From the NCBI GenBank assembly GCA_001643675.2, contig LSRY02000043.1, forward strand, positions 558,001 to 622,000: 64,000 bases of DNA, read 5' to 3'. This stretch comes from Monocercomonoides exilis PA203 (taxonomy: Eukaryota; Protista; Preaxostyla). Shown here piece after piece: positions 22,408 to 57,079 of this stretch; the first letter of the stretch is position 1; each line of letters begins with the position of its first letter. The notes under the pieces are model-generated. The model had not been told where the DNA came from and made no database searches. It saw only the letters and a program-made list of their open reading frames with translations. The position numbers were made by a program, and so were the translations under genes.

Positions 22408-22475
<68 letters not shown>

Positions 22476-22972
22476 AGAAAAAAAAAAAGAATGTCTTTTT
22501 TTAAAATTCAAAATGTTTCCAAAACAGAAAATGAAACTTTTACCATTGAAAAATCATCTTTAAGAAAAAAATAATGAACCCACAATCTTTAATGACAAAG
22601 TTGCTGACAATGATTCTCTGAAAATTGTTCACAATTGAAAAGACATTTATGGAAATGCGAATGAGAAGATGTTGAAAACAATTGATACAACATCATTACC
22701 AGTTTCAACACCTCTTCTTTCTTCTCCTCGATATTTTTCTGAAACGCCAAGCCGTTTCAGTCGTGGATTGAGAACGTTTGGAGAAAATGTTTTCAATCCA
22801 TACATTCAACGTGGAATTTTTTCTTCAAGAGAAACGGACAAATCTCATCGGTGGTCGTTTGTTATGTATATTTTGTTCTGTCAAGCATATCATTTTGAAC
22901 CATTACCGCTTGACCCAAATGCAATGTATGGATTTGTGAAACTTCTTGAGATTGCGTTTGATTATTCATTTT

Positions 22973-23603: not shown

Positions 23604-25008
23604 AGATATTTGTATATAAAAATATTTTTTCATGAATTTTGAACTATTATTGTGAATTTATTTTTTTCGAAAAATAAATAAATAAATACACTTGACTGTT
23701 CTTAAAGTTGGAAATCATAAGGTACTTCAGGATGTGAAGTCCAATCCTTTGAAGTCAGATGCTTGGATATGAAAAAACGCATGCGTCCAGACGTGTCTTC
23801 GATCATTAAGGAAGCTTATGGAGCGTTAAATACGGACTGTTCATCCTCTTGTTGCTAAGGGCTTCATTCTTTTTTGCGGAAAAGTATGTTTCAACTTATT
23901 GACTAGCATTATGCATGTCATCACTCCTTCAATAAAAAGAATAAATAACGAAAAAATAGGAAAGAAGATAAATAACAAAACAAACGCAGAAATAAATGAG
24001 GCAATAAGAAGTTTAAAGAACGATAAAGAAGTCAATAAAAAAGGAAAAGAAAGGGAACCTGCGCTGATCACTGACGTCGCTCGCATTGTTCATAAACTCC
24101 CCGATGATCTGGATTCTAAATATTTGGAAGCTTCACTTTATCTAGTGGGCGTTCAAACTGGAGCAAGGGCAATTACGTTATCAAGCCTAAAAATGTGTGA
24201 CATTAAAAGAGTTATACAATCGAAAGAAACAAACAAACTTCTTGTTACCTTTTGCTACAACCGGACAAAAGGTTCTTCGCATTGGGATCATCATGAACTA
24301 TTGAAGTATAGAAGGAGAGTTGCAATGAAAACAATGCAGCATTTTTTCTTTCGATGCACTTGAATTAAAGCGTTTGTGTATGTTTGAGTGAGTGGATGTT
24401 GAAGAAAGAGGAAGTTGAAAATGAAATTCCTGTTTTGTGAATCTTTACAGATGTAATGAGAGAGAGGTTCAAAATGAAGGCCGAAAATGCAGGATTCTAT
24501 CGGAATCTTTTCTGCTTCCACTCTATACGAAGTGGATTCAGATGCCCCGCCCTCAATAAGAGTGGAAAGAATGATGATTCGAAGAAGGCTGTGCTTGAGA
24601 AGACAGCAACGATGTTTGTTGTTACCTGATAAACTACAAACAAACGAATCAAGATAAAAATAAAAAAAATAAAAATTGTAGAATAAAAAATACAGGATAC
24701 AATTAAATGAAATTTAAACTATTATATTGGGTGTTGATTTTTGAAATGAAAAAAGTCTTTTAAAGTTTGATTTTTTATAAATGTTAAATACTTAACAATT
24801 TATCAATAAGCTAATGCAATAGATGAACTGAAAACAAAGAAATCAGGAATGGGATTGTTTTTTTTTTTTATTATTTATATTCATTAATTTGGAAACAACA
24901 AAAATTTTGTTATTCAAAAATTTTATCGAAATAAAATCTCTTTTTTTTTTAAAATTACATACTCGGTTTTTCATAGCGGTTCGATAATAAACAGTCACAA
25001 AAAAATAT

Positions 25009-28186: not shown

Positions 28187-28940
28187 AATTATCTATTGCA
28201 AATGACAATAAGCATAATGGAAAATCGTTAAAATATTGTCGATTGAAGAGAAAATTTTTTGTTCACAAGAATTTAATCAAGTTTGATTCTTTTCAAAAAT
28301 GACTATAAAAAAATATGCAAGATTGAAAATAGTTATTCGAAAACATTAACAAACAAATTATGCAATCTTGTTGCACATTTGAAGTGAAAGTTATAACCTC
28401 TGTGAAAGTGTGAAAAAGAAATGAAATGAAATAATTTTTTATTAAGGTTTATTGATTGAAAATTGTGCTGAAGTCTTTTTCGAAAATTAAAAATTGTTGG
28501 TTAGTGTTTTTTTCCTTTTCAAAACAAATTTCAAAAAATTGTTTGTTCCTATCAAAAATAAAAAATAAAAAATAAAAAAACTGACGGGCACTGATTGACT
28601 TGGTCTCGCCATTTCCAAGGTGACGCAGATGTTTATTTTTTTCATTATTACAAGTATAGGCTTATGGGTGGAACAAAAGTCCAAAGGTGAAATATTTCGT
28701 CCCATTTGCTTTTCATTCGTTTCGATCAGGTTTCATTTTGGTAATTTTAATAATAATAATTATAATAATTATAATAATTATAATAATTATAAACTGAATC
28801 ACAAGTTAATAAATCTTGAAGGCCAGAAACGACATCTGATCCTCTTTTTGTCACAAAAAACTGATCACTCCTATTTGAAATAGAGCAATTATTACAAAAA
28901 ATACGCATTTCAACATTTTGTATAATGAAAGCAAACATAT

Positions 28941-29166
28941 TGGATAATTCTTTTTGAATAGTCGCAAAAGTTTAATTTTCAAATAAAAGAATAATTTCAT
29001 TTTTTCATCAATACTCTGTACCCACTCATGCGATAACACAATTATAGAAATAATATCATTATTTAGGTTTTTGTATCCATTAAAGTGAAGTTTCAAACGT
29101 GGGAACAGAAAATTGATGAAAACGTGATATTTTTTTATTTGAAAATCAAACAAAAGGAAATTTTCG

Positions 29167-29230
<64 letters not shown>

Positions 29231-29237
29231 ATTTGTC
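28941..29237. mobile_element. Diverged fold-back MITE copy with a poly-A expansion in the right arm
   Basis: Shares TTTTTGAA.AGT...GTTTAATTTTCAAATA and ATTTGAAAAT.AAACAAAAGGAA arm sequences with the 240-bp family; ATAT at 28937-28940 and 29238-29241. Confidence 0.65.
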
Positions 29238-30199
29238 ATATCATAAATATCTCAACAATATTTGAAAGCAGAAAAAGAAGTCTCTCAAAAACAAAAGACA
29301 GTTCTTTTGGCTGATTCTTCCCTCCAAAATAAGTGTCGCAAAAATAATTATTCTTAAATCCATCCCACACGTCGAAATTATACGAAAAGATTCTAAGAAG
29401 ATGAAACAGATACATGAATGTTTTTTACAAACTATTCATTGAAGAAATGTTTTGAAATTTAAGATTAAGAGAAGCCATGCATTAACAAATGGCAGAAAGA
29501 GGACACATACCGCGATTGTTTTTCAAGTCTCTTTGAGAAGAAAGAAGCATGACAACGCAGGATCTTGTTTATCCTTTCGAAAACAATTAAGCAAATATTG
29601 AAGAAGAAGAAAAGTGAAAGATATGACGATCATTGTTTTATCAGAAAATTAATTGATTCGTTTTTTGAACACAAAATAACGTCAATAATACGTTTTTTTA
29701 TTGTTTGAATCACTTTTTTATTGTTGTTTAAGTTTGCATATGATGAAAAGAAATATATTATACTCGGTCATTGCTAAATGAGAAATGAAATAGTTTTCAT
29801 CATTTTTTTTCTTTTCTAAAATTCGAATAAATCTTTTATGAACGAAAATTTGGACAATGTTACAAACTCAATAAAAAAATTTATTTTTGTTTCATTTTGT
29901 TTTTTTCATGTTATGTCGCAATTTCTTCTCCACTTCCGACTTGAATTTTTCACGACATTTTTTTAAATAAAACATTTCTTCACACATGCAAACAAATTCA
30001 TTTTGACATTAAACCTGTTTCGAATGAAAGAGGAAAGATCGGAGGTTGGTGAATTTTGCTTTCATTAAAAACCTACGGGTTTCATAATGAGAAATCCCAC
30101 AAATTCACGTCAAAAAATTTTCAATGAAAAATTACAACTACTGAGCAATTTGCAATTTAATGTCAATATGGAAAATTAATTACTGTATTTGAATTTCTA

Positions 30200-31359
30200 A
30201 ATAATGGGAACGAAAAAATTACATATGAGCCAAATTGACGAAAAGGAAAAGCATACTATTGAAGTGTTGGATCAAAGAATACAGGAATCAGCTTTGCATT
30301 ACACAACTGACAAAATCAACTCCAAACTTTAAAGATCTTCGCAAGAATTAGAAGAAATCGTTGAAGAAAAAAAAAGGTCAAATTCCGACTGCAATAGAAT
30401 ATGAACCTATAAATATTCCAGATGATTGCTTGCAATTAGTTGAATGTGAAGTTTCAAAAACAAAAAGGAAGTGAGGACCTCAGAAAAAAGCTGTGGTACC
30501 AAAGATCAATACAAAAGAGAGAAAAAAGTACAACATGATTCCGAATAACATGAGGAACTTACAAAAAGCAGACAAGAAGGATGGAAAGACTCTCGCAGAA
30601 TTATCAGAAAAATTCAATGTTATTTTATTTACAGTTTCAAAAATTGTGCACGAAGAAGAGCCTCCAAAACAGCGAGGAGGAAAGGTTTGCGAAAAGATAA
30701 CAAAAGAAGCATCTTAAAAAAAAGGCAGAAATAATATATCAAAAACCAACGGTTGCAGCAAAAGAATAGGAAAACTCAGTTGCAGATGTTTGCACATCAC
30801 AGCTACTTGTTTCAGATGTTGCAAAGCACATCAATTCTAAAAAAAAAACAGAGAACATGAGTGTCAGGTTTTTTATGTGAAAAGATTGAGAAAATAAGAA
30901 AATGCAAAAGTGGACGAAAAAACTAAACAACTAGAAAAAGAATTCATCAAATGTTTTTTTAAAAAAAGAGAGAGGGGTGGAAAGATGATAATTTACATAG
31001 ATAAGACAGGATTTAATCCCTTGAACTGCAAACAGAAGGACGCTCACCAGCTGGTCAATGATGCATTCATTTTCGATAAAAAAAAAGTCGAAACAGTCCC
31101 TTCAATAACTGCAACTTGCGAATTCTTCTGTACAACGTGCTTGACAATTGTTGATAAAACAGTTAACGATCAAAGCCTTCGAGTGCTTTTGTTATCATTG
31201 ATAGAAGAGTCGGACACATTCGAAATACTTTTAAACGTTTTCGTTACAGATAATATTGGATAACGCAAAACAAAAAAGTCACAGATTTTTATTTTTTCGA
31301 ATAATGATGAAATTCAAACCATTGCATCAAACAGTTGTTAGTTGAATTCCTTTGAAAAC
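30200..31359 (+). pseudogene. IS630/Tc1-mariner-type transposase pseudogene
   Basis: HTH-like GKTLAELSEKFNV...TVSKIV followed by RGG; IIYIDKTGF (first D motif), FVTDN (second D), decayed ...LNSFENV (SPxLNPIE motif); multiple stops and frameshifts. Confidence 0.8.
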
Positions 31360-31617
31360 GTGTAATGAATTTTATAATCATAACTTTTTTCAAAATGTTG
31401 ATTTTTCAACTATTTTGTTTCTTCAGAGAAGAATTTTTTATTTGAAAGAAAGAATTTCAGAAAATTGTTTGTAATAACGGTATTTGAGATTATTTTCATA
31501 AAAATATGATTGTTGAAAAGAGTTGTAACTTTTCAGTGTTAATTTAATAATTATCCAATGGAATTCAATAACCGATAATATTTTTCAGAAAAAATTCGAT
31601 TGTAAAAATAATTACAC
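31360..31617. mobile_element. 258-bp diverged MITE (GTGTAAT ends) truncating the Tc1-like transposase
   Basis: Left GTGTAATGAATTTTATAATC vs right reverse complement GTGTAATTATTTTTACAATC; start resembles the 22014 element; TSD not conserved. Confidence 0.6.
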
Positions 31618-31847
31618 ATATCTAAATGGAAAAATATTTGAGAGCTTGAATCATAAATTATTTTGTTTTCGCCTTTTCTGTTTCAAGAATATTAGCTTGT
31701 TAATCGGCTTTATGAAGAATTTTCCAGTCTATTGAGAAGTAAACAAATTTTTACTTGATTTGATTGTGTAAAACACTGTTTGAGATCGTGCCAAAGTTTT
31801 TTATTCCTTTGTTTCCCCAAAACAGTTATCCCTATATAATAGACTAG

Positions 31848-32445
31848 TCCATGGGGCAAAAATGTTACCACACAGTAACATCACTGCCTATGGATATTTC
31901 ACAACATCCACTCCGTGTACTTGGTGAAAGGCCTGGTACGAACACTCCATTTTGGGTGACCAAATGGGTTATTCTGATTTACTGTAGGTTTCCCCCCTTC
32001 ACGAATTTTACAACACATACCGGGGATAAATGGGAGAATCTGTCACACTTTGGGAAACACAATATTCACAACAGGTCGCCAAAGATAAATGTTCCTTAAT
32101 AGACTTTTTTGTTTGCGAAGCAACACAAAAAAATGAACCAAGAACACTTTCACATGCACTTGGCGATTACAGCCCAAAAGAACATCCAGAGATTGTGCTA
32201 AACTAATCCAACATATTACTCTGTCAAAACAACCCATTCAGTCACTTGTATATTTAGAAGGCATACCTTATGCAGAAATGTTACTGCTCGCAAACATTTC
32301 TCCTTATAGCCCATAAACATACCTTATATATCGAAAAAAAGAATTCGGTTCGACTTTTTTTTGACTCTCAAAAATATAAGTATATAATATAAGCATATAT
32401 TCATAAGGCAGAAATGTTACCACTTAGTAACACTTCCGCCCAATG
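31848..32445. repeat. Three dispersed palindromic units GGCAGAAATGTTAC-N6-GTAACAyTTCyGCC
   Basis: Copies at 31848-31894 (spacer CACACA), 32268-32308 (spacer TGCTCG, more diverged) and 32402-32445 (spacer CACTTA). Confidence 0.85.
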
Positions 32446-32670
32446 TAAATACTAAGTCACAATATATTATATTTTTCTATATTTGCTTATTTTTTAAAAA
32501 GACAAAAACATACAAAGTATTATATTAATACCTCATATATCAGTCTTGGATTCGAAAGTGATATGACAAAAAGGAGTACAATAGAAAATAAAATAACCAA
32601 ATCAAAAAATAATAGGTATTCAATAAGCACTGAATACTCTGTTATCCCCGTTTAATTTGTTTATCCCTGT

Positions 32671-33246
32671 TTAGCGCTTTCCTTCCCATGTGCACGGGCA
32701 TCTTATATGCGGACATATAAGAGGCTCTTCCCTTTTGTCCCCTTGTCTGGCCAAGCGATGACATCTTTTTCGTGATTCATTCTCTTCGTGTGTTTCCACA
32801 GTCAGATTCAGAACGGTTGAATCACTATCCAGATGGCTCACTTCCAAGCCAGGCGGAATCTTCGCTCCCATGTTCATCCATCTCCATGCCAGATGGTGAA
32901 CTTCGACCTTCCAATTGCAGCCAACAACACATTGCACAGAAATCTGAGGATAAACACTTCGCTTATCCTTTCCAACTGTTTTGGTTCCAACAAGATTCAT
33001 TTTAATAAAGAATTCATTTCCGCGCTTAACCCTCGTGTTCATGCTTCTTGAGCCTGTAAGAAAGTTCGCCATTATAAAGTGTATTTCCACGAAATTGAAT
33101 TCGTTAGCTAGGGACTTATGTTCAGGCTTTTTCCAACTTTCATCCTTCTCATAATCTATTCGAGCATGCAAGGGATTGTAATGCTCCGAAAAGCCACCTT
33201 TATCACCACTTCTAGCGTTCTCATCGGCATCTTTCATGAACCTCAT
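32671..33246 (-). CDS. His-Cys box (His-Me finger, I-PpoI-like) endonuclease domain; C-terminal part of a longer disrupted gene
   Basis: YPQISV...VHHLAW...LEVSHL...L.VETHEENESRKRC...CPH..CPC matches the His-Cys box catalytic pattern (SHL, ExxxxNxxRxxC, CxH..C). Confidence 0.85.
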   Translation of the reverse strand: MRFMKDADENARSGDKGGFSEHYNPLHARIDYEKDESWKKPEHKSLANEFNFVEIHFIMANFLTGSRSMNTRVKRGNEFFIKMNLVGTKTVGKDKRSVYPQISVQCVVGCNWKVEVHHLAWRWMNMGAKIPPGLEVSHLDSDSTVLNLTVETHEENESRKRCHRLARQGDKREEPLICPHIRCPCTWEGKR

Positions 33247-34155
33247 CCACCATTCCCTCGTCTTCTTAGAAGTCGAGTTTCATTCCAAGCTACTTGGAGA
33301 TTTTATACTTGCCAGACTACTTGCCGATTCAGCTAAGAATCGGACAAGCTGGGATTCTTTAAATCCCAAAGTCACCGAAACAGGCAATTTCAAATCTCTT
33401 TTTGCTTGAACATATAGCCTGGTGGCTATGTTCATAAGACTGTCATTGGGAGAGTCTTCATTCGAAGCAACTTTCAAAATGAAAGGCAACTTCATTATCT
33501 CCGCTTCACAAAGGCGAAGATGAAAACGATCGTCCTTCAATTTTTGAATACACAAGGATTCCTCCTCGTATTCAAAGAATTGAAAACAGAAGTTGTTCTC
33601 CAAATCGTCACTTACAACGATTTTCCTTTCCTTTTTCAAAAAAGGAAGTGGCTTTTTGGTTTTTTCAACCAACGGGTCAATGTTAAAGGGTCCCCATCCG
33701 ACTAGAGTAGTTCATCCAAATAGGATAAACTTTTTTTTTTTTTGATGTTCTTCTGTATCTTCTTTTAAAGAAACAAGTCCCTGAACACATATTAAAAAAC
33801 AAATCTAACTGCAAACCTTCGTCATCACTGTCAAACATCAGAGACACCTCCATTGAGTCAGAACTGACATCAAGTTCGGTTGTCTCAGTGACATCGTCAT
33901 CCTATGGCAAAGTGTTTCGAAATTGTTGCAGTTGGGAGTTGCCAGTCGAACACTTTTCCTCCTCCTTTTTTTTATATTAACAGACTGATAAGCCTGAGAG
34001 TAAACCAGTTCAACACTCAGAGGCTCCTCCAGCGCAGCAGGCACCAGCAATCGCGGCCACTTCCTCACTTCATAGTCTTCGACAGGGGTTGGTGCCGTAA
34101 CCAATTTCCCTTCAAAATGAATGCAAAATACAAATCGACATGAGAAAAAAACCAA
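33247..34155 (-). pseudogene. Upstream part of the His-Cys box gene (in-frame TGA, probable 36-nt intron, frameshifts)
   Basis: ORF 33280-33672 is in frame with the nuclease ORF, separated by one TGA (...SPSSLE*NSTSKKTREWWMRF...); GT..AG T-rich segment at 33781-33816; further coding-like sequence 33838-34155. Confidence 0.55.
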
Positions 34156-34989
34156 CCTATATACTTGGTGGAATAAACTTTCTTTTCAATCCAACCCTCG
34201 GTAATGGAGTCGTTGTATTCATCCGCTTTGCTGTTCAAACATTGTTTGACTGTTCATTAATATTCAAACGATTTCAGAAAAGTGATTTGTTATTTGCATT
34301 CTTTGAATATTTAAAAAACAAACCAGATAATTGTTTTTTGAAAGAATTTCAAAAAATGAACAAGTATGATAGGTTTGTGATAAAATATACAAATTCAAAT
34401 TGTCCAACACAAACACATTTTTATTAATCGATAGGTACCTTTTGGATTCATATTCTCTTAGAGAATATATTACGAAATTTTTATTTTGAACAATTTATTT
34501 ATCAACACCGCAAAAGAATATTAATTTCAATGATTATCCATAAATTATTTCGAATCATGATTATTAAAATATCTTATATAAAAAAATTTATCAAAAGCGC
34601 TGAACAATATTTTTTTTAAAACATTTCCCATAATCACATACAGAGAAATTAGATTATATTGGTTATAATTTGATCTTAAAATTTAAAAAACCTTCTGTAC
34701 ATAAAGAGCATAACTTGTATTTTAATGAATATAGATGCATTAGATAGAAATTAGTTAGACATTAGTATATAGCACTTTATTTATCGGTATTGCACTGAAT
34801 TCTTTTGTTGTTCAGCATTTTGCAATTGTTATTTATTTGGGGAAAATTACTGATTATATTTAGTTTTCAGTTGATATAGAGCATTTGAAATTTATTGTGA
34901 AAGGGATGCAATGTTTCATTAAAAAATTACGTTTACAGAGAGTCTTTTTGCAACAAAAAATTCTTCTCCTTAAAGATGATCTATTTTCA

Positions 34990-36255
34990 ATATAATGAAT
35001 GGAGATTTCAAACAAAAACTGCAGACTCATTATCAATTGGATGGATTTTCGAATGACAATGCGAATTTTGATTTCTTAAAAATTCTACAAAATATGGAAA
35101 ATTATTGCCATCCAACATTAGAAAAGAATGCTTGTAGAAGAAAACCGAGATGACAAAATGCGACAAGTTGCAGGCACTTTTCAGATTTTACAAAAATGTT
35201 TCTCAATTTAAAGTGCAGAAGAAAGATCAACAAAATGCCAGTTGTACACATATGTTTTTTATTCAGCACCAAAAGGAGCAAAAGTCGCATCGACAAATCT
35301 TTTGCTTATGTCAATGACTAACGGAGCAGATTTTGATCGTTTGCAATACGTCAAGCCTTTTGTCGAATTGCGTAACACTCAAACTTCAGTTGAGAATGCA
35401 GCTGAAACTTTTTGGATCAAATGAACGAAGGATAAGATCCAAATGAATGCCATTTTTCTGGGGAAAAGAGCATTTATGGAATTAGCGTGGCTGAGGGCTC
35501 AGATGAATTGAAACAAAGCAGACCACTAACATTAAAGATAAAAGAACATGAGTCACCAGAATCTGGCACATTGACAATTCAAGAGGATTCAATCAAAAAT
35601 GAAAGCCTTTTTATTTCATGTCAATTCAAGAGATTGGAAATAACTTCAAAAGCTTGCGTTGGAGACGATGTTAAATCTATCCGCTTAGAGGATAAGAAAG
35701 ATTATCTTTTTGTTTTTAGTGGAAGAACTTGTGGAGTCATGGGATGTGCTACCATTGCATGTTCATCTGGAATGAGAATGGAATGGCTCGAGGGTTATGG
35801 ATTTCCGACAGCGTATGGACTCTTTTGTCATCGTTTACCATTCGAGAAGGAGTTTGGCGTTGCACATAGAGTGTTCGTTGCGATAGATCGAATTTTAAAA
35901 TTGGAGCCGCTTTGATTGAGGCTTTTATAATTTTACAAAATAATTGAATCGATCATCTTGGAGGGACAAGTGCAAAGTTCGATGGAAATATTCTTCGTTT
36001 CGAAAGCCATGTTGTAGCTTGTGAATTTCTAAATATTTCATGCGCAGTTTCATTGGAGATTGACATGAATAACAAAATTTGTGCAAATTTCATTTCGGAA
36101 AACGGCTCAAGAGTTGTTTGTTTCGTTTTCCAAATTCTGTGTTGATTGCCATAACAAGTGATAAATATGGGTTCTCGATTGCTTTGCATTCATTGTTAAA
36201 AGTGAAGAAGCCAATGCTCGAAGAGAAGCTTTCAGATGAATTTGTTGAAATGCAC
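34990..36255 (+). pseudogene. Degenerate unknown gene divergent from the nuclease gene
   Basis: Coding-like composition; ORFs 35242-35424 and 35487-35915 separated by a stop and frameshift; no recognisable motif. Confidence 0.4.
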
Positions 36256-36728
36256 TGAAATGGCAGTTAAATGCAGATTATATCGATGCTTGACCATACA
36301 GTTTTATTGAATTCTCCGAATATTTTTTTAACTGGTAGATTTTTTTTTTTAGATTTTTGAAATAAAGCAATGTGATATAAACATTTTAATTTTGTTTTTC
36401 CTGTGTCTTTCTTTCTGTTATTGTAATTTTTGATCAGTAAAGAAGGCTTCTTAAATTTTATTTTCTTCATTTTCCATTTTATTTTTTAGCAAATGGAAAA
36501 CATAAATCTCATGCAATATTCTTCTTTTGATTTTTCTTTTATGAAAAGACAAATGGATATTCTGCTGGATGAATGGCTTTTATTTTCAAAGAGAAAGCAA
36601 TATTTTGCTCAAAAAATAAAAGAATACTTTGAATAATCTTCTGAAAAATGTTGTTGAATTGCGATATGAATTGTTAAAAAAATACGCAAAATAAATCTTG
36701 AGTCATGAAGCGAAATCTATTTTGTTAT

Positions 36729-37400
36729 TCAAACATTTACAAAATAATCAACTATATCCAATGAAACTCGGAAATAAAACATACTGTCAAATTTAGGAAT
36801 AATTCTATAAAGGCTTGTGATGATATCTTCATAGCCTTCTTCTTCTAGCTCTTCAAATAACTTCATCTTTGCTGGCCTTCTTTTCGCTTCTTCAATTTCG
36901 CTTTCTGCCTTTCTTTTCAATCTGATTGTAATTTTCAAGCAGAATTTCAAGTGTCTCAATAACAAATTGCTGATCAATGTTGGCTGCTGCATCTCCTCCA
37001 TAATTAGATTAAACACACCTCCATTCAAAAAGACAACAGTACGAACATTCTCCATATTTATAATTGTGTGTAAAAGAGAAAGGCCCTCTTCATATATTTC
37101 ATTTTCACTCTCTCTCTCGCTGCTCTGCAAATCCCAACAACACACCGAATCACTTCATCGTATTCTTCTTTCCATGTGGGGAAAAGCAAAAAGAACGCGT
37201 TCAATTTTTGGAGCCAATTCTTTATGATAGTCATGCCTTTCCATTCTCTTCCCTTCTTCCCTTTCTCTTCTTTCCTCTTCCAATCAACATATTTCGATAG
37301 CTCATCCAATTCTCTTGATGCTTCTCTCGCAAAATGCAGTTCATTCGCAATCATCTCTTCCAAGCTTTCATCATTGCAAAGTCTATTTATCAAAAACTTC
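36729..37400 (-). pseudogene. 5'-truncated, frameshifted member of an expanded helical-repeat gene family
   Basis: Overlapping ORFs 37058-37393 and 36729-37145 (SLEEMIANELHFAREASRELDELSKYVDWKRK ... FEELEEEGYEDIITS ... DYFVNV), joined by a frameshift in a GA repeat; recognised from memory as a Monocercomonoides multicopy family. Confidence 0.7.
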
Positions 37401-37932
37401 CAAGAAGATTGTTTGATAGTCCATATTTTGTGTGAATGGATTATTTTTGATTCTATTTTCTAACTTTTTTTTTTGAAAAAATCATTGATTTGAATTGAAT
37501 TAAACTAACAAGCAAAAGTGTTGTGACTGAAAAGTTTTCACATTGAAATGTTTTTTTTAAAAAAAAGAAAAAAAAATCTAAGAAAAACATCACTTCCACT
37601 TGAAAAATTCAATTATAAAAACTCTTATTCTTCAAAAGGGGAGATAAAATCAAAAATTAAAAGAGAAGCTTCAAAAAGTTGAAATATCACACTTAAAAAC
37701 ACTATTCAGAGGATGACAGATTTAGAGAAGTTTGACTTTTGCTTCAAGAAATTCATTCCACGGGTGTTCAAACAGACGAGAAAATTCAACTTAAACAAAA
37801 ATTCTTTAAAAATAAGCATTACAAAAAAGAAGCAGGAGATGAACACGTTATTGTTTGATGTGTAAAGATTGGTATTTGACGCAAAAAGAATATACAAATT
37901 CATGTTTAAAACAACAAGAAGAGTTTTGTAAA

Positions 37933-38177: not shown

Positions 38178-41100
38178 TTAAGAATCTTTGAAAGACGTCG
38201 AATCTGGATATTCCTTCTTTGCTTTTGAGATAATCTTCTTAAAATCTGAAAACGGTCCTCTGGGAACTTTCAAAGTGAACAAAACAGAGCAGCAATTCTC
38301 ACACAGCGCTTGCGAAACTCCGATGGAGCGCTCCATCAAATCCTTCAGGGTGTTCACAATGTTCAATTTGATGTACTGCTTCTTCTGCTCATCGCTCATC
38401 GTTGTACAAGCAGCGACAAGACTCCCTGTCAAATTGAGTTTTATATCCAAGATATCAGGTGCTCCTCTGTACGTGTTCTTCCTGTGATCATCTCCTGGCT
38501 GCGCAATCGGCCAGGCGTCCGCTGGCGAGTCCATGTAGAACCTCAGCACATCATCCAGTACATTCATCCCGTCTGCCGCAAAGAACTGCGTGCTGAACTG
38601 GAACGTCGACACCAGCTGCGCAAGCGCGCCCAGCCCGTTCTTCACCACCACAGGGCACGTGCGGTAGTTCTGAGTAATAACCTCCATGATCGACGTCACT
38701 GCCCCCAGCCCTCCAAAGATTTTCTGGTTCTTCGGCACAAAGCAAAGCCCGTACATTATCCCCAGAAGAAGCTCAGTGAATGGCGTGTTGGTGGAGCAGT
38801 ACTTGCTCAGCAGATAGCTCAAAATGGGAACCACATCGCTGTTCTCCAGCTCCGCGCGCGACTGCTTGTGCGACAGCGACATCGCACACAGAACACCCAC
38901 AGCATTGTGGATGGTGTCCAGCGAGAACCGCTTGTGGTCATTGACTGTCGCTGAGACTGCTTGAAGCACACCCGACTGGAACAGGAGATCCAAGTTGTCC
39001 TTTGTCTGCGTCGCGTAGAAGTGCAAGATGGAGCAGCCGTACTTCACCACGCCTTCGTCGACGTCGCGGTGGATGCTCACAATCTGCGTCAGCAGCGGAA
39101 TCACACTCGGCGCCTCTCTCCCGACAGCCACACGCCCATCCCTCGTCTCCAGCACATTGTTCATGATGTGCAGCGAGTTTCGCACAATCACAAAGAACCC
39201 GTCTTTGAACTCCTCCGCCAGGTGGAACAGGTCTGTGATGCCTCCTCTGACCACAATCATCTGGCACACATTCTGCTCCACTGATAAGTTCACCAGCGCT
39301 CCTGTGGTCAGCCTTGCCAAATCGTCGTTAGTCTCTTTGAACTTCTGCTTCAGCTGGTCAATCAGCGACTTCTCTGCCGATGCGCGCAGGATCTCCTCCA
39401 TCTCTGACGTCGATGTCGAAACCTGGTACAAGAAGCCAGTCAGATACTTCAGCACAAACTGGTCGTAGTACGCCTGCTGCCGCAGCACATGCGCCACACG
39501 CTTCATAATCCCCTGCTGAAGGATGAGCGTGCGGCAGGCAGGAGTCGCCGAGAGGAAGCAGATCATTTCTGAGTAGAAGAGCACTATGCTCGACCGCACT
39601 TTCTCGCTCATAAACATGGCTGTCAGATACGGAATCACCTTGTAGTTCAAAAACGACTCGTGTGTTTCCTTCAGCCGAGACAGAAGCGACAGCAACGACA
39701 CCAGGTCCAGCAGCCTCCCACGGTGGTTCTTCCGCAACTGCTGCATAATCAGCTTGATCAGCTCGTCATCGGCCATCACTTTCACCTTCGTGACTGCTGA
39801 GCGGTTGTAGAACAGAGCAATCACTCGGAAATATGCATTCCAGATCGTCTTTCTGTCTCCCATCACCAGCGCCTCCTTCAGCTTGTTGACAACAGTCTTG
39901 ATGATGTTGTCAATCGCCTTCAGACCTTTCGTCTTTGACGTCTGCGACAGGAAATACAGCGTGTCCTTGTGCTTCGCATCCAAATACTTCGCATGCTCTT
40001 CTCTTCTTCCTTTCTTCGTCGTCAGCTCAACTTCAATCAGATTCGCTGGCACCAGATACGGCTTCTCCTTCAACAGATCCTTTCTTGCTTCAGCTAAGTC
40101 CTTCTCTTCTTTGAACAGCTCAGCGATATACAGCGCACTTATCCTCTTCAATGCCTCTTCAGATGGAACAATGTGTTTCGTCTTCTTCTTCAGCTGCTTC
40201 ACTCCCTGTGCCCCAGCATTGATGAATGGCTGCAGATCGTCCAGAACAGAATCCAGCGCCTCTGTCTCTTCTTCGTCCTCTTCAGAAGTAGAAGAAGAAG
40301 AAGCAGAATAATATTCTTTTTTCTTGTCTTTGCTGCTTGAAGTGTATATCGTGCGTGTCATGATCAGCTGTGTCAGTGGCACAAGCTTCATGTCCTGATA
40401 CTTCGACTCTTTGTCTTTCTCTTTGTCTTTTTTGCTCTTCTCCTTCTTCTCAGCAGAAGAAGACGCAGATGATGGCGATACGGGTGGGCCTGATGCTGAA
40501 GAGCCTGTTCCATCATCATCGTCGTTGTCATCGTCTGACTCGTCAATTTCTTCATCTTCGAAGAATTCCTCCTCCGCCGACCGCTTCCTCTTCTCTTTCT
40601 CTCTCTCCTGCTTCCTCTTCTCTCTTCTCTTCCTCGCCAGTTCTCTCTCCTTTTCTTCTCTCTCTCTCTCCCTCTTCTTCATCTCCGCCCTCATCTTACT
40701 TCTATTCACCTCGTTCTCGTCTGGCGTGATATCACTGTCATCCAACCCGTCTTCCTCAATCTCCACATCCAATTCAACCTCCTCTCCTTCCTCTCCGTCT
40801 GCCTGCACATCCACATCCACCTCTTCTCCATCGTCTCCGTCTGCCAAAATGTCTACATCCACAACTTCCCCATCACCTGACACACCATTTCGCCCCATTC
40901 CGATTTTGCCCCTCTTCTTTTTCGATGGCTCCATTTTTTCTCCTCTTCTTCTTGCTCCTTTCTCCTTCATGTCCTTCTCTTCCCTTTTTCTCCTCTCCTC
41001 CTCCTCCACTTTCCTTATCCTCATCTCTTCTTCATCATCTTCCTCGCTCTCGTCGTCTTCTTCAACCACGCCAAGATTGAAGAAACCATCTGATGTTACC

Positions 41101-44100
41101 ACATTTCCCACAATACTAGACTCCATGTTCCCATAGTCCATTATATCATCCACCTCATCTTTTCCACCTCTCCTTCCTCCTTCTTCCCCATCCTCTTCTA
41201 ATGAGTCTAAATCAAGCTCTGCCTCCAAATCATCATCGTCATCATCATCGTCATCATCACTGGAACTTGAGTCTGATTCAATTGGCTTTCCGTCTTTGTC
41301 CTTCGCTCGCTCGCCTTCTCCTGCTGCACCCGAAGCGCTTAAGGAAAGCTGTTTCTCTTTCTTCTCTTTTTTTTCCTTCTTCTTCTTCTTCTCCTTCTCC
41401 TTCTTTCTCCGCTCTCTTTCCTCAAGCAGCTTCTTCTTCTTCTTCAGCGACGGAGCAAACTGTGTTGGCTTAGCATCGTCTTCAATTGCAAATTCTTCTT
41501 CTTCCTCTGAAATTTCCTCTGCTTTCCTCTCCAGTTCTGCAAGCATCGCCATTTCTTGTTCTCTTTCTCTTTTTTCCTCTTCTTCTTTCTCCTTCCTCAA
41601 ACGCTCAATTTCAGCTAGTCTTTGCAATTCTCTCGCTTTTGCTTCAGCTTCTTTCTGTTTTCGTGCTGCTTCTAAATCAGCTAATCTCTTTCTCTCTCTT
41701 TCTTCTGCTTCAATCTTCTTCTTCAGCTCTTCTTCTTCTCTTCTCTTCCTCTCTTCCTCTTCTTTCTTCTTCCTTTCTTCCTCTTCTCTAATCATTCTGT
41801 CTTCTTCTTCTAATAACCTCTGAAGCTCTTCTTCTTCCTCTTTCTTCTTTCGCTCCTCTTCTTCTTTTCTCTTCTTTTCTTCCTCTTCTTTTCTCTTTCT
41901 TTCTTCTTCCTCCTTCCTCTTTCTCTCTTCTTCTTCTTTCCTCTTTCGTTCCTCTTCTTCCTTTCTCTTTCTTTCTTCTTCTTCCTTCCTCTTCCTCTCT
42001 TCCTCCTCTTTTCTCTTCCTTTCTTCTTCTTCCTTTCTTATTCTCTCTTCCTCTTCTTTCTTCTTCCTCTCTTCTTCCTCTTTCCTCTTCCTCTCTTCTT
42101 CTTCTTTCCTCTTCCTTTCCTCTTCTTCTTTCCTCTTCTTCTCTTCCTCCTCCTTTCTTATTCTCTCTTCTTCTTCTTTCCTCTTCCTTTCCTCTTCTTC
42201 TTTCCTCTTCTTCTCTTCCTCCTCCTTTCTTATTCTCTCTTCTTCCTCTCTCTTCAGCCTTTCTTCCTCCTCTTTCTTCAACCTCTCCTCTTCTTCAATC
42301 AAGCGTAACCTTTCTTCTTCTTCCTCTCTCGCCCTTTCTTCTTCTTCCTGCTTGTTCAGCAAATCCAGTTCATCCATAAAGTCATCATCCAACACAATTT
42401 CCTCTTCTTCTCCATTATCCCCCTCGCCATTTTCTTCTCCTTTCGCTTTTTCTCCTTCATCTTTGTCGCTTTCCCTCCCAAAAAGAGCCTTGTCCATCTT
42501 TTGGTCTTTGATAAACTTCTCCACAAGCAACATGTGGATCGCTGCCTCACTCATCACCACTTTCTTCCCTTTGCCTCTCTTGCTCTTGTTTGCTTTCCTC
42601 TTCTTCTCTCTTTTTTCCTTTCGCATCTTCTTCTCTTCCTCTGAAAGCTTCTTCCTTCGCTTCCTCAGCTCCACTGGCACTCCCTCTGGATGCTCCCTTA
42701 AAGGAACAATCTTCCTCCTCTTTACAATTATTGTTTCATATATTTGCTTATGATACTTCTTCACAGTTGATCCGCTTTTTCCTTCTTCTCCTTCAACTTT
42801 TGCCTCGTATTCCACAGCGCCTGGCTCACCTTCCTTGCAATCCACCCATTTGGGTACTTTCTCCTCTTCTTCCACAATAATCGCCACCATCGGCTCGTCA
42901 AGCTCTTCCGACGCCTGCACGTTTTTCCCGCTTCTGTTCTTCCTCTCCTTTATCAGCTCCTCTTTGTCCAGAGGCAGCCATTCGTCTCCCTTCGCACTCA
43001 GCAACAGCGCCGTGTCAGCTGCCGACAGCTCATTCAGCGGTGGGAGATTGGGTGTGTGGGGGGGAGATTGGGAAAGAGTATCAGCATTTGGCTCAGAGCC
43101 TTCGGAAGGAGGCATCGGAGGCGGTGGGAGATCAGAAGGAAGTGCTGACTCGTCCAAAGGAGGAGGCTCCAGATCAACCCAGTCGTATTCCCAGTCGCTC
43201 TCTTCCTCGTCTTCGAACTCGCTTTCTTCGTCGAACTCGTCGCTGTCGCTCGAGCTGTCTTCTTTCCCTTCGCCTCCGCTGCCTTCTTCTCTCTTCTTCT
43301 TCTTCTTCTCGCTGTCTGCCTCGCTCTTCCGTTTGATGTTCTGGAATCTCTCATCTCGCCCGTCCAGATCGCCCTTCGACACATCAATCTCTTCTCCTTC
43401 CTCGGCCAGGTGCTCCTCCACACTCACCACGTTTCCCTTTGAATCCATCACAATCGTCTGCACAACACCATAATCGTACCCTTCGTCTTCATCATCTGCA
43501 GATATGGAGGACGAAGAAGATGAGGATGAAGATGATGTGCTAGCAGATTCGTCTTTTCCTGTCTCTTTTGTTCCTTCCGCTTCCAAATCTCCTCCTTCTC
43601 CTTCTAATGCTCCTGCTGTTTTGGTTACGCTTCTTCGAACTCTCTTCCTTCCTGTGCCATTTGCATCCAATTCCTCTTCCTCCTCTTCTTCACCTCCCTC
43701 GCCTTCAACAATCGTTCTCCCGCTTCCGCCTATTCTTCTGCGCCCGCTTGCCCCAGCTTTGCCTGTTGTTCTCTTTTTGATTCTGCCTCTTCCCGTGTCT
43801 TCCTCTTCCTCCTCCTCAATGACTTCTTCGTTGTCTTCTTTCAGACTCTTTCCATCTTTTTGATCTTTAACTTTAGATCGAAGAGATGGACGTACTTTTC
43901 TCACTATCCCTCCATATCGAATAAGTCTTGCCGCCAGCGTGTCACTAACAACTCCCTGAGGAGTTGGAAGTCGTTTTGATAAAACATTACTCCTTTGTTG
44001 CGCTTGATCAAGTTGCATAAATCTGTTTCGAACAGTTTCAAAGCTAAAATCAGAAAAATCTTGTTGCTTCATGAATTGACGTCTCCATTCATCTGTACTC

Positions 44101-44521
44101 ATCTCTTCTCCATTTTCGTCTCTTATAACAATTCGAACTTTCCTGAACACTCTTTCATTTCCATTTTCTTTTCCATCTTTTTGTCTCAAACGGAAAATTA
44201 TTCTTTTTTTCTCTGGGACGACCACAGGATGAAGACGATAATACTCTAAATAACAATAATTTTATAATAAAAAATATAAGTAGCTTTGCACAAAAAAATT
44301 CAAACCAATTGCGTGGCTATTCACAAGGTTAATAAACTTTGATGTTGTTGGAAGAGGAATTCCATGCTTTTCAGAAACGGTTCCAAAAGCATTCACCAGA
44401 TTTGAAGGAACTCCGTTCTTATATAATTCCTTCAATGTTTCAGTCACATCACCGAGCTTATCCTTAAAAGCAGGAGGAATCTGCTCTGGCTTGATTCCAC
44501 ACTTTGAAGGCCATTCAGCGT
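38178..44521 (-). CDS. Large protein: acidic/charged N-terminal region, EEERKRK coiled-coil repeats, C-terminal armadillo-like repeats (5' exon unresolved)
   Basis: 2015-aa open frame. A 60-nt GT-AG intron at 44246-44305 joins the upstream exon in frame (HAI-EYYRLHPVVVPE). The last ~550 aa show ~42-45-aa helical repeats (GALVNLS, GVLCAMS, GALAQLV, GGITDL). Confidence 0.88.
41750..42340 (-). repeat. Coding tandem repeat, 8-aa unit KEEEERKR (single-alpha-helix/coiled-coil type)
   Basis: About 20 or more degenerate 24-nt units in the translation. Confidence 0.9.
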
Positions 44522-52309: not shown

Positions 52310-55300
52310 TCATTTGGTTGAAGAAGGCAAAGGATTTGAAGAAGATTGATTAAACTTGGTTGAATTGGATGAATGATCAGACTGAAATGAAGTGTTTGAG
52401 GAAGATGGCAAAATTGCAGAATATTCTTGAGAAGATGAAATGGAAGAGGAAGGTTTGGCTAATCGTGAAGTGATTGCAGATGATACAGTTGATGTGGAAT
52501 ATGGAAGTGTCTTTTGCGTGTTTAGTGGCGTGGAAAGAGGAGAATTGCCTGGTCTGAAGCGAGTTGAAGTGGAAAGAAGATAACTTCGTGGTTGCAATAA
52601 GGCAGATACCTGAACTTTTTTCTTGCTGAAGATGATAGAACAAATACATAAAATAATTATCATAAAAAAAAAGTAGGATTCAAAAAAATAAATGAAAATA
52701 AGTTTCAAATATTCAAAAACATCTCATATTCATGGATGGGAAAAAATTATAGATTCAAACTTCAATTGTCTCATTGTATCACTTTGCGAAGCAGATATAT
52801 CTGTTTCTGGATCAGTTGCTTTAAAATTCCTCTCCGCTCCCGCTCTTTCTTCTCTCATTGCCTGTTCTTGTTTGAACTTGAATTTTTCCTTCAAAACAGC
52901 AAGCTCCTTTTCTGCAAATATTTTGTCCTTCTTCAAATTAAGTATCATTTCTTCCATCTCTGCACACTTCGCTGCGATGCTTTCATACTCCTCTGTCAGC
53001 TTCTCCAGCCTTGTTTGCAGGTCGTTTATCTCCTTTTGCTTCCTCTTCTGGTCCTCGCTGATCTGCTTCGCCCGCTGCTCGGCATATTCCTTCTTCAGCT
53101 GAAGCTCCATCGTCTCTAAATTCATCAGACGTAGTTTTTCTTTGTTTTCATCCAATTTCTCTTCCAATTCCTTTGTTTGCCCTTTCAGTTGTGTTGAATC
53201 GCCTGCAAGTCGTTCTTTTTCTCTCTCCATCTGTCGAAGGGCTGTTGTTAGTTTCGCATTTTCCTGAGTAATTCTGTTTAATTCTTGCTTATCACTCGCT
53301 GAAAATTGCTCTTGTTGTTGAAGATTGTCACTCAAAATATCGAGTTTTTGCTGAATTAATACAACTTCGTTCGTCTTTTCAGCACATTTGTTTTCTGCTT
53401 CTTTCAATTTCTTTTCCAATTCGCCTATCAACATTTCTTTTTCATTGATCTTACTCTTTTTGTTGGTTAGCTCATTTTTCAATTCTTCCATTTTCTCTCT
53501 CATTACCTTGTTTGCCCTTTCAGCCGTTCTGAGATCTTCTTCTGGAACCGTTTTGATCCGCCTTGATTCGAGTTCCTCGTTTCTCTTCTGTAGCAATTCA
53601 ACCAATTCCTTTGTCTGCTTTAGTGTTTCTTTTGTTTCCATTTCTTTTTCTCTCTCTCGAGTGGAGCTTGCTTCCAAAGAACTGTTTTTCTTTTTCAAAA
53701 ACGTTATTTCTCTTTCTAAATCGCGTAATCGTGCCGAAAAACTGGAACAAAATTGGCGAATCGACGACAGAATTGATGAAAGTGGAATGGAAGATGAAGA
53801 AAATGAACCAGAAAGTGAATATTGAGTTGAATTTGTTGGCAATGATTCTTGTTTCGCATTCATTTCTGTACGCTGTTTTCTGTTTGAAGATGTCCTGCTT
53901 TTCACAATTTCCACAAACAGCTTCGAAACAGGAAAAGGAAACCAGAAATTATCCTTCCCGTACATTTTGATTCCATAGCTCATCAACGAACTCGAGTTTT
54001 CTTCCTCTTCTTCTTGTGAGCGTGGATCGAAATTCGAGAGCACACGCAAAGCAGCCTCGCCTTCTTCGTCTTTGCCCAACCCTTCCACTTCGGGAATGAT
54101 CGGATCTTCGGCAATAAACGACGAATCACACAAAAATATCCGCCTTCGCCCAAATTTAAAGGTTGTTCCGAACATTTCATTTGTTGCTGAAAGCAATGAA
54201 TTCAAGCGATTTGAAGCGAGAACAGCAATTGTTGCGACGCGAAACAGGCGCAAATAGTTTCGAGGATTTGAATTAGAAGCAGAAGGATATGAACCTGCTA
54301 TTTGCGCTGTGGCTGAAGTGGATGGGCGAAGAGGTGTGAAGGGCAATTGTGGTGTGCGGAGTCGAAGTGAACGAGAAAAACGGAGAGAAGACAGAGTTGT
54401 GTCGAGTGAAGGAGATGATAAGCGGTTGAACGAAGAAGAAGACGAAGATGAGGAGGACGAAGAAGCTGAAGATGCAGATGCAGAAGCAGAAGCAGAAGCA
54501 GAAGCAGAAGCAGATGAAAGCAAAGCAGAATCTTTGTATCGGCGAATTCGAATGCTTCCTTCACGGAAATCACCTTCATTTGCAGCCATTTCCTCTGCAA
54601 TGCCATCATTTGAAGCAACTCCTCCTCTTCTTCCAAATGATTCTTCATTCTCTTCTCTTGCTCTGATCTCTTCTTCCAATGCTGCCAGCATATTCTTCAG
54701 CTCAATAGCTTCTTTTTCTGCCTTTTTCATTTCTTCCGTCAGAATTTGCTTGCCAAACAAGACGGAGAAATACCTCAAACGAAATGGTCTGAGCATCCTG
54801 GCCATCAAAGTCGTGCTTGCAAAAAGATGCAGAAGAAAAGTTCGTGATTGTTGAGCTTCCATTGACAAAGCATCATTCGCCATCTCTAATTTAGTTGCTG
54901 CCAGTTTTGACTCGCTTTGCTCTTCGATTGCTTGCTTCAACTCGTTTCGAAGCTGTTTTATTTCTTCTTCGGCTTCAATTCTAGCAGCTGTTTCGCTTTC
55001 AAGTTTCATTCTTTCTGCTTCGCTTGCCATTTTTTGCTTTTCTATTCTCAATTCGCACTCTTTGTCTTCAATTTCTTTTGCCATCTTTTCGTTTTCTTCT
55101 TTCAGTTTGTCCACTTGCTGTGTGAGAGATGAAACAGCAGAAGATGTTTCTTTCATTTTTTTCAAGTTCTGCTCGTTTGCTTCAAGCAAATTACGGACTT
55201 TTTGAAGAAGAAGAGAACGTGTTGTGTTCCAGTCAGATGCTTGCCCCATTTCATGCAGTGAAAAAGGCGTTGGCGAATATGCTGAAGATGCTGCTGAGTT

Positions 55301-57079
55301 TGTATAAGTTGGCAGAGGCGACGAAATAACAGAAGAACGCTCAAGTTTTGGCTCGGTTCTTTCATCAGCCCCTTGTTGCTTATTCTTATTTTCTGAATCT
55401 GTTATCATCTGCACAAGAGAATCAGCAAAATTCTGCCTATCAAGCAGCTCATTTTCTGCTATTTGCTTTTGGCGTGCCTCTTCCTCTTCTCTTCGCTCGC
55501 ATTCTTCTTTTTCCTTTGCAAGCTTATCTTTCTCATTCTCAAACTCTCCAATTTCCGCTTTCAACAGCAAAACAGTCTTCTGAAGTGAAGCAATGTTTCT
55601 GTCGCAAGCCAGTTTTTCCTTTTCGCTCTGTTCAAGTTGCTCGTATGCTTCTTTGCATTTGTATTTTGTCTCAAAAACTTCGTTCAAAAGATCGCTAATC
55701 CTCAAAGCCAAGCTTTCGACACTTTCAGCAACCTCTTTGTTGCATATGTGTTGTGTAATATCTGAAGAAGAGTCTTCAAAATCGTCAGCTTCACGAAATT
55801 CTTCTTCTTCATTTTCATTTTCATTTTCATGTTCTTTTCTTTCATTTCCATTTTCTTTTTCATCATTCAAATCTGTATTATCAACAGAATGGAAGTCATC
55901 ACTTGTCATCTTCTCATTTTCCATCTTTTCTATTTCTTCATCATTTTTTTGCTCATCTTGCTTGAATGTGACGTTTTTCGTTTCTTCAATTTTGGATTCT
56001 GATGCAGCAGATGTGAAAGCCATGTCATATCTTTGTAGATCTTCTTCTTGATCGAGTGCATTCTCAATGCTTCTCAAAAGTAGCATATGTGCTCTGCTTA
56101 TGTCTTGAACAAGTGATGCGTTTTCTGTTTCCATTTTGATCAGCTCTTTTTTTGTTGTGTGAGAAGATTCTTGAAGTTGACTGTTTATTTGTCTTTCTCT
56201 TTCAACTTCCTTCGCAAGTTGTTCTATTTTCTTTTGAGATTCGATCGCTTCTGGCCCATTTATAAGCAAATCGTTTTGAATCTTCAGTTCTTCGATTTGT
56301 CCTTCGTTTTCATTTATTTTGTCTCTCAACTGATCAATTGTTCTATCTTTTTCACCAATTGTCAACTCATATTCGTGAAGTTGTTCTTTCAAATCGTCGA
56401 ATTTTCGAATTGACTCTTTGAGATTATTGTTTTGTTCTTTTTGCACTTCTAATTCATCCGCAAGCAAAATTGTTTCTTCCTCAATTTTCCCTTTTTCAAT
56501 TAACATCCCATTGAGTTTCTCGTTTTCTTTCAAAGATAGGTCATAATTTTCTTGCATGTTCTGCATTTCTTCGTTTAACTTATCGAATTGTTCTTTAAGG
56601 GAATCGCGAGTTTGTTGAAGGTCTTTCAATTCTTCATCCTTTTTTAAATTTTGTTCAATAAGTTTTTGATTTTCTTCTTTCTTAAGGTTTAAATCTTTTG
56701 AAATCTGTTCCTTAGCATCTCTCATTTCAATGTACTCTGTTTCATACGAATGTAATCGAGAATATGCAGACTTTAGTACGTAAAATGAATAATATTATTG
56801 TAATTTTAAAATGACACAAAATTAAAAATTATTACAAACATCTAACTCTGTCTCAAGTTTCGAAAAGTTTCTTTCTCTCTGTTCTGCATCCCTTTCAAGT
56901 GCACCTATTTTTGCTCCCAAATCATTTATTGTTTGTTCATATTCTTCTTCAATTGCTTGGTGCTGCTCTTGATCTTTCCTTCTCTGTTTTTGATAACTTT
57001 CCTCTCTTGCTTCTAATTGTGCAATCTTAAAACGCATTTCTGTGATGGAATCTTCTGTGCTCGGATTTGCGTTTTTCAT
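52310..57079 (-). CDS. Long coiled-coil protein, CCDC171-like, multi-exon
   Basis: Exons at ~56840-57079, ~52750-56770 and 52310-~52609; heptad-rich; contains TLMARMLRPFRLRYFSVLFGKQILTEEM and LRLFRVATIAVLASNRL, matching my recollection of the CCDC171/PACT-like FRxxVIAVLAANRL block. Confidence 0.8.

Follow-up and report, generated by a model that had tools for sequence, protein, structure and literature searches.

His-Cys box endonucleases are textbook homing enzymes, tied to the group I introns of nuclear ribosomal DNA (rDNA). What, then, is the gene for such an enzyme doing on its own, with a cluster of palindromes beside it? The question is raised by a 64,000-nucleotide stretch of DNA from the oxymonad Monocercomonoides exilis (G000:C40:558001-622000, in an assembly of 82.3 Mb and 101 contigs), which we refer to as the window. 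On its minus strand lies an open reading frame (ORF) for a nuclease domain, and three related palindromes lie past its stop codon. An original prediction, made from the sequence alone, took nuclease and palindromes together as the possible signature of an undescribed mobile element, with ends or a guide RNA defined by the palindromes. Here we argue for another explanation: that oxymonads have a small lineage of free-standing nuclease genes of the His-Cys box type, to which this gene belongs, and that the palindromes are most likely the cognate sites of the encoded dimer. We give this explanation about an even chance of being correct.

The nuclease ORF (32671-33246, minus strand) is intact, with 191 codons, an ATG start and a stop codon at 32671-32673. 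Its own Pfam matches are sub-threshold: HNH_3 at E 0.015, and PF05551 (zf-His_Me_endon) at E 0.029 and 15.0 bits, against a gathering cut-off of 27. A profile made from the ORF and pieces of its paralogues, searched against 1.84 billion representative proteins, recovered 51 relatives at E<=0.001. Of the 30 relatives in the alignment, ten match PF05551 at E<=0.01, the best of them at 4.6e-5. Against the sequences of the PDB, a five-sequence profile gave no match at E<=10. The best match of the 30-sequence profile was I-PpoI, weakly (E 1.3) and over the catalytic SH...N..R..C; SH..ES..N..R..C of the profile pairs with I-PpoI residues 97-125. Structure prediction gives the same name. The AlphaFold2 model of the ORF has a mean predicted local distance difference test score of 80, mostly high over residues 41-190. 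Its top three Foldseek matches are I-PpoI entries, again weak (E 0.14-0.33). In VIA-align three I-PpoI entries, and no other chains, reach Z>=2 (Z 6.3-6.8, root-mean-square deviation ~4.0 A), with 111-113 residues covered, model 49-189 against I-PpoI chain 2-143. A Z below 8 is middling, but the match stands alone, spans the whole domain and agrees with the sequence evidence. The Pfam evidence is weak, but profile and model both point to I-PpoI; on these grounds we regard the domain as a true I-PpoI-type (His-Cys box) nuclease, as originally predicted, with the whole predicted fold contained in residues ~49-189 of the ORF.

Which parts of the active site are kept? In the 30-sequence alignment (consensus KVLVHxxxWR...ISHxDxD..VLNL..ES.E.NESRK.CH...CPH...PC) the invariant residues are H117, H138, E151, N156, R159, C162, C178, H180 and C185. 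They include the predicted catalytic histidine, H138 (H98 in I-PpoI), and the predicted metal-binding asparagine, N156 (N119 in I-PpoI). C162, C178, H180 and C185 make up a C-terminal Cys/His set that aligns to I-PpoI only up to C125; from their order we infer that the last three correspond to zinc ligands of I-PpoI. Conservation does not extend to the first zinc site of I-PpoI: the sequence reads SHLDSDS where I-PpoI has SHLCHNTRC.

The gene lies outside rDNA. An Rfam search of the whole 64 kb window gave no family at gathering score, whether rRNA, group I intron or any other, and none of relevance at E<=1 within 31400-37600, so the absence of an rDNA or group I intron context is upheld. All four foreign relatives that we read in context (on L046, L044, L057 and L058) lie in or beside eukaryotic large-subunit (LSU) rDNA, with group I introns above the Rfam threshold on two of the four contigs (L044 and L057). 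M. exilis also has an intron-borne enzyme of the same superfamily. The L1923 group I intron of its 28S rDNA (at C6, C96 and C97) encodes an endonuclease, a 185-aa ORF that matches PF05551 above the cut-off. With hhalign, the window gene aligns to it over 33 columns at a probability of 27%. Because this relation is remote, the free-standing family does not appear to be a recent escape from that intron. Two of the foreign sequences are curious in themselves. L044 (metagenome contig ERZ27237525 k141_107273), an rDNA unit of a eukaryote, has five group I introns and also, within a span of 1.5 kb and on opposite strands, two His-Cys box genes. On a metagenome contig of 57 kb, P0016 (L047:8001-11321) encodes a protein of 1106 aa with 15 repeats that match positions 83-127 of the His-Cys box profile, an odd repeat protein made from part of the fold.

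An intact homologue occurs in a second genus, in Streblomastix strix. This gene, P0027 (L066:6001-6822; SNRW01000824.1), has a single exon of 273 codons, with TAA and TAG read as glutamine, as in the Streblomastix code, and TGA at its end. It is flanked by ordinary protein genes (WLS-like_TM), and its neighbours show no sign of rDNA, Rfam not having been run there. In a quick maximum-likelihood tree it joins three M. exilis copies with a Shimodaira-Hasegawa-like approximate likelihood-ratio support of 91; the grouping is provisional because long branches meet at that node. The assembly that holds it, SNRW01, is that of S. strix (PMC10703272).

How many such genes does M. exilis have, and are they alive? 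DNA and protein searches of the whole assembly found four copies of the nuclease domain, here named by contig (C40, the window copy; C28; C64; C16), and two fragments (C54 and C59). The C28 copy (360.0-360.9 kb) has a TAG, a TGA and three one-base indels. The C64 copy (393.4-395.4 kb), whose protein is 37-50% identical to that of C40, has a TAG in mid-domain, and the C16 copy (1062.5-1062.9 kb) has two stops. The C54 fragment (4.9-6.5 kb) is truncated ahead of the catalytic half; the C59 fragment lies at 132.3-132.6 kb. C40 has a TGA and, further upstream, frame breaks. Nanopore sequencing could account for one-base indels but is unlikely to have produced the substitution stops. In C40 and C28 a nuclease frame of 179-191 codons is still open, with all the invariant residues, the predicted catalytic and zinc-binding ones included, kept.

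Comparison of the copies suggests that they were not always decaying. Between C40 and C28, the ratio of non-synonymous to synonymous divergence (dN/dS) of the nuclease domain is 0.25 (25.5 non-synonymous and 23.5 synonymous differences), with a chi-square against neutrality of ~22 by our own calculation. The ratio is 0.36 for C64-C54, 0.14 for C64-C16, and 0.58 for the N-terminal part of C40-C28. These values indicate that the paralogues diverged under purifying selection, and hence that the family was functional while it diversified. In M. exilis the unit now seems to be largely decaying.

The palindromes are where the original prediction had put them, some 230-820 bp downstream. They lie 232-815 bp past the nuclease stop codon, and their degenerate pattern gives six strand-hits in the window (three sites, both strands) against 0.01 expected. 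Site 1 (31850-31893, core 31856-31887) reads GGCAAAAATGTTAC-N6-GTAACATCACTGCC, with outer arms CCATGG../..CCTATGG. Site 2 (32266-32308, core 32272-32303) reads GCAGAAATGTT-N10-AACATTTCTCC, and site 3 (32402-32445, core 32408-32439) reads GGCAGAAATGTTAC-N6-GTAACACTTCCGCC. At sites 1 and 3 the arms reach ~20 nt. C28 has the three orthologous palindromes and a fourth within an 84 bp indel, and all seven sites share the core AAATGTT-N10-AACATTT, with variable spacers and outer arms. Candidate small ORFs over the region are not conserved between C40 and C28. Genome-wide, the C40 pattern rises above control level on C40 (the three sites) and C28 only; hits on C42, C27, C46 and C34, none with a nuclease remnant within 5 kb, were set aside as background.

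A diverged form of the palindrome accompanies C64. Here six direct AGTTAG[GT]C units, 50-85 bp apart, lie 480-800 bp past the stop codon, placed with respect to the gene as the palindromes of C40 are, and four of the six form AAAGTTAGKC-N3-GMCTAACTTT palindromes. At <=2 mismatches this pattern is unique in the genome save for one unrelated hit, and a control pattern is commoner. The general form common to C40/C28 and C64 is AAA(T)GTTA...TAAC(A)TTT. Sensitive DNA alignment of the regions downstream of C40 and C64 found no homology beyond the coding end, so the two arrays can be compared only as motifs. A third locus, C54, has a single site, AATGTTAGTC-GTA-GACTAAC, 65 bp past its homology with C64, and its sequence falls between those of the C40 and C64 types. 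From about nine background hits in 82 Mb and ~36 kb around the family loci, we roughly estimate a chance of ~0.4% that a site would be placed so. Generic palindrome-cluster scans of 138 kb of M. exilis DNA, which give a rough background, passed the C64 array alone and, owing to register differences, missed the window's own cluster. Just past the C64 array, at L039:6418-6470 (C64:392417-392469), lie two GC-richer hairpins, TTTCCACGTATCAGGTGGAAA and GTGGTTGTCGTTGGACAACCAC. The association of palindrome and nuclease within M. exilis is thus real but not universal. Palindromes accompany the nuclease on C40, C28, C64 (as the variant array) and C54 (as one site), but they do not accompany recombinase genes, and of the M. 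exilis nuclease copies only C16 is without them.

What do the palindromes do? As homodimers, His-Cys box enzymes recognise near-palindromic targets (PMC3943268, PMC3384342). For this reason, and because the arms are conserved as sequence, we rank the palindromes first as cognate DNA sites of the encoded dimer. A structure-only element would fit less well. Conservation is found in the sequence of the arms, between which the spacers differ, and no compensatory changes are seen: covariation among the seven hairpins (20 pairs) scores 0.145, where shuffling gives 0.192, no measure exceeds the shuffled controls, and two pairs have changed on both sides where 3.4 were expected. According to this explanation, a dimer of the encoded nuclease would bind or cut the adjacent palindromes; gene and palindromic sites would form a single unit in inheritance and in divergence; and low-copy spread would have come about by duplication or homing-like repair copying, not by cut-and-paste transposition.

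Several observations count against the proposal that the palindromes are sites of this dimer. Between C40 and C28 the palindrome sites show no more conservation than the surrounding DNA. The core, at 7+10+7 = 24 bp with arms of <=20 nt, is longer than the 14-15 bp target of I-PpoI. The resemblance of the C40 and C64 half-sites is based on a short AT-rich motif, and the C64 array resembles a degenerate 50-55 bp tandem repeat, for which reason the multiplicity of sites perhaps reflects local amplification. All the M. exilis copies are damaged somewhere, and the lesions are private to each. There is no palindrome array at C16, where homology ends 56 bp after the stop codon, and none was found near the S. 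strix homologue. Finally, the gene-sense strand folds better than the other at six of the seven C40/C28 sites and, by small margins, at all six C64 units, as a role in RNA would predict.

A bolder version of the same idea is that the unit is a selfish nuclear module. A His-Cys box nuclease would have left an rDNA intron, become free-standing, and travelled and co-diverged with palindromic target-like sites (AAATGTTAC at C40/C28, AATGTTAGTC at C54 and AAAGTTAGKC at C64), spreading by break-induced copying. Such copying would resemble that of the yeast WHO/HO elements, with another enzyme family in place of theirs. We consider this version unlikely.

Is the unit instead a discrete mobile element? 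Searching the block around the gene against the genome, as had been proposed, did find a second copy, but no shared transposon boundaries or target-site duplications. The duplicated block spans 31711-37411 (5.7 kb), and its other copy lies at C28:354708-362005 in the opposite orientation. The two are 80-84% identical over the nuclease gene and palindromes and 93% identical over 34571-37411, and the C28 block has an insertion of ~1.5 kb, C28:357541-359018 (L004:2542-4019), relative to window position ~34575. As a whole the block has just this one other copy in the genome; the stretch 35.3-36.7 kb has a third on C52. No inverted similarity connects the block ends at 31711 and 37411, and no target-site duplication was seen at them. 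At exactly the right end, 37411, dozens of scored copies of another, unrelated family also stop; this high-copy family (855 first-look candidates) has a member at 36730-37411 (minus strand). The relation of C40 to C28 looks like segmental duplication in repeat-rich DNA, not transposition.

The mobile-element explanation would make the palindromes the ends or recombination sites of the element, moved by the nuclease itself or by a nearby tyrosine recombinase or Tc1/IS630 partner. The spread of the family over at least five contigs speaks for it, as do dN/dS ratios well below 1 combined with private lesions, a pattern like that of a transposon family. The arm-spacer-arm form recalls recombinase core sites, and the C54 palindrome lies 5' of the gene where the arrays elsewhere lie 3'. 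Against it, the data contain only four to six copies, a block without terminal inverted repeats whose right end belongs to the other family, and no palindromes elsewhere in the genome. Nor did the suggested partners hold up. The recombinase-like ORF (23899-24363) has no Pfam support; it is ~7 kb away from the block, and none of the C28, C64, C54, C16 and C59 loci has it. The Tc1-like element is an independent multi-copy element with nuclease-free copies of its own, and Tc1-like ORFs do not recur at the other nuclease loci. The notion of an undescribed element with palindrome-defined ends therefore fails as stated, and we think a discrete mobile element of any such kind very unlikely. Improbable to a lesser degree is that the palindromes are functionless: minisatellite-like local repeats copied along with a segmental duplicate of a decaying nuclease pseudogene. 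A block that lacks terminal repeats and takes in unrelated neighbouring DNA would be expected, and so would lesions in every copy, palindromes that are not islands of conservation, the tandem-like spacing of the C64 units, and the lack of palindromes at C16 and in S. strix. Dead repeats account less readily for related palindromes beside the gene in two lineages with unalignable flanks, for the intermediate site at C54, and for the restriction of both motifs, which are at or below control level elsewhere in the 82 Mb. Purifying selection between the paralogues, moreover, suggests that the family was not simply dead DNA.

Two further explanations deserve mention. In the first, the palindromes work in RNA and not in DNA: they would form hairpins in the 3' untranslated region of the nuclease mRNA or serve as precursors of small RNAs. 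Their place, past the stop codon and on the transcribed side, suits this. Of the two strands, the gene-sense one is the more stable in the window, where sites 1-3 fold at -21.4, -13.7 and -25.5 kcal/mol against -19.1, -7.1 and -13.9 on the other strand (the gene-sense hairpin of site 3 has a z of -7.5), and also at three of the four C28 sites and in the C64 units. A strand difference of this kind is expected from G-U pairing on one strand. The seven sites show no covariation, however, it is the arm sequence itself that is conserved, Rfam has no match, and the lone C54 site is on the 5' side of its gene copy. The guide RNA that the palindromes had been thought to define lacks support on the first and third of these points, and RNA hairpins in general seem to us a rather unlikely answer. 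Alternatively, the host may have domesticated the gene: a homing endonuclease would have given rise to a protein, specific to oxymonads, that serves the cell by binding DNA or as a nuclease, and the copies in M. exilis would be its ordinary birth-and-death paralogues. The intact S. strix gene between ordinary genes, the grouping of the oxymonad copies in the tree and the purifying selection would all suit such a gene, and the SMAD MH1 domain shows that an I-PpoI fold can become a DNA-binding domain (PMC3384342). Yet every M. exilis copy is broken somewhere along its full length, repeat-rich DNA surrounds the copies, and the catalytic residues have been kept, not lost. We see little chance that domestication is the explanation.

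Whichever of these holds, how far does the gene extend beyond the nuclease ORF? The nuclease domain was predicted to end a longer, spliced ORF. In part it does: the minus-strand frame runs from ~33715 down to the stop codon of the nuclease ORF and is broken by one in-frame TGA only. This TGA, at 33280-33282, severs an N-terminal extension (33283-33715, minus strand) from the nuclease ORF, and the C28 copy is open there. The extension is homologous to those of C64 and C54. It matches no Pfam family and, in the word-index protein search, has no relatives outside M. exilis; likenesses to fungal DUF6532/DUF6698 scored <0.9 in the ESM Atlas and were treated as noise. The spliced part of the claim is less secure. 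Frame breaks and a stop occur at ~33.69-33.75 kb, beside an A13 run, and the upstream exons and short introns (33716-34155, minus strand) are putative. One acidic exon of ~31 codons, near 33.82-33.90 kb, would start DDDVTETTELDV and end SDDEGLQ; a second would lie near 33.98-34.16 kb. GT..AG sites, and the same exons recognisable in the C28 copy, make them plausible. No sequence joined across a stop or putative intron was used in our searches; the pieces were searched separately. The word-index protein searches returned M. exilis gene models alone (MONOS_5383, MONOS_11364 and MONOS_16664), and MONOS_5383 is the closest database protein.

How does the family compare with known systems? I-PpoI and the other His-Cys box enzymes of rDNA introns (PF05551; PDB 1a73, 1a74, 1cyq, 1evw) share its predicted fold, the catalytic His and Asn, a putative C-terminal Cys/His zinc site and a nuclease part of similar size (~150-190 aa), and the nearest non-oxymonad relatives of the window family are in or beside LSU rDNA. 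Unlike I-PpoI, the window gene lies outside any intron as well as outside rDNA, its ORF scores under the Pfam cut-off, the family adds an N-terminal extension of ~150-300 aa without known relatives, and the first zinc site of I-PpoI (C41, C100, C105, H110) has not been retained. It exists as a few dispersed, partly broken nuclear copies with adjacent palindrome clusters. The yeast HO/WHO genes and the F-type endonucleases of phages are likewise homing-type nuclease genes without an intron or intein (PMC3943268). They are similar in low copy number, in decay and in having target-like sequence beside the gene. They differ in using LAGLIDADG, GIY-YIG or HNH enzymes. Lox and FRT sites have the same arm-spacer-arm geometry, and two of the three window sites have a 6 bp spacer. 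In contrast to such sites and to the ends of DNA transposons, the window palindromes have no accompanying recombinase or transposase, are clustered on one side of the gene, and come without terminal inverted repeats, a visible target-site duplication or further genome copies.

We found no description of a free-standing His-Cys box case in the literature searched, and in a 2017 survey all 62 known members of the I-PpoI clade were fungal (PMC5714182). What is new here is a branch of the His-Cys box enzymes specific to oxymonads: its genes are free-standing and extended, and it has palindrome clusters of its own. Purifying selection between the paralogues and an intact homologue in a second genus show that the His-Cys box family is able to leave the rDNA niche and persist. 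If the 191-aa protein binds or cuts the palindromes, the two would form a natural pair of a compact dimeric nuclease and a ~24 bp site. A single genome would then hold diverged protein-site pairs, a resource for work on shifts of specificity in homing enzymes and perhaps for engineering. The nanopore assembly of M. exilis is 46% repeats, with 35% 'unclassified repeats' (PMC8767320), and the window family puts a name to a small part of the latter.

The remaining observations concern the neighbourhood. Near the C40/C28, C64 and C59 nuclease copies are members of the high-copy family that ends the block, at distances of 2.6-3.7 kb overall and 2.6-3.3 kb for C64 and C59, and this may be either chance clustering in repeat islands or real linkage. 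Besides the window member, two lie at L040:1073-2418 (C64:397072-398417) and C59:135127-135922, and the family has open frames. Pfam has no match to the ORFs of this family or to 34.9-36.3 kb. The Tc1/IS630-like element of the window (29600-31361) has at least six other copies at 75-82% identity, none beside a nuclease gene (C91:1638606, C8:16666, C7:1562076, C9:994889, C13:961967 and C13:981439). Next to it, 29237-29612 is a repeat of ~375 bp, similar to a miniature inverted-repeat transposable element, with at least 20 copies at ~80% identity on many contigs, elsewhere without a nuclease; shorter repeat pieces lie at 28790-29170. On the other side of the nuclease gene are three very long minus-strand open frames, 38178-44225 (2015 aa), 52730-56725 (1331 aa) and 57282-62540 (1752 aa). 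They have no Pfam match, include low-complexity E/K/S-rich repeats and show strong GC and AT skew. Pure poly(A) runs occupy 22410-22488 (79 bases) and 29167-29228 (62 bases).

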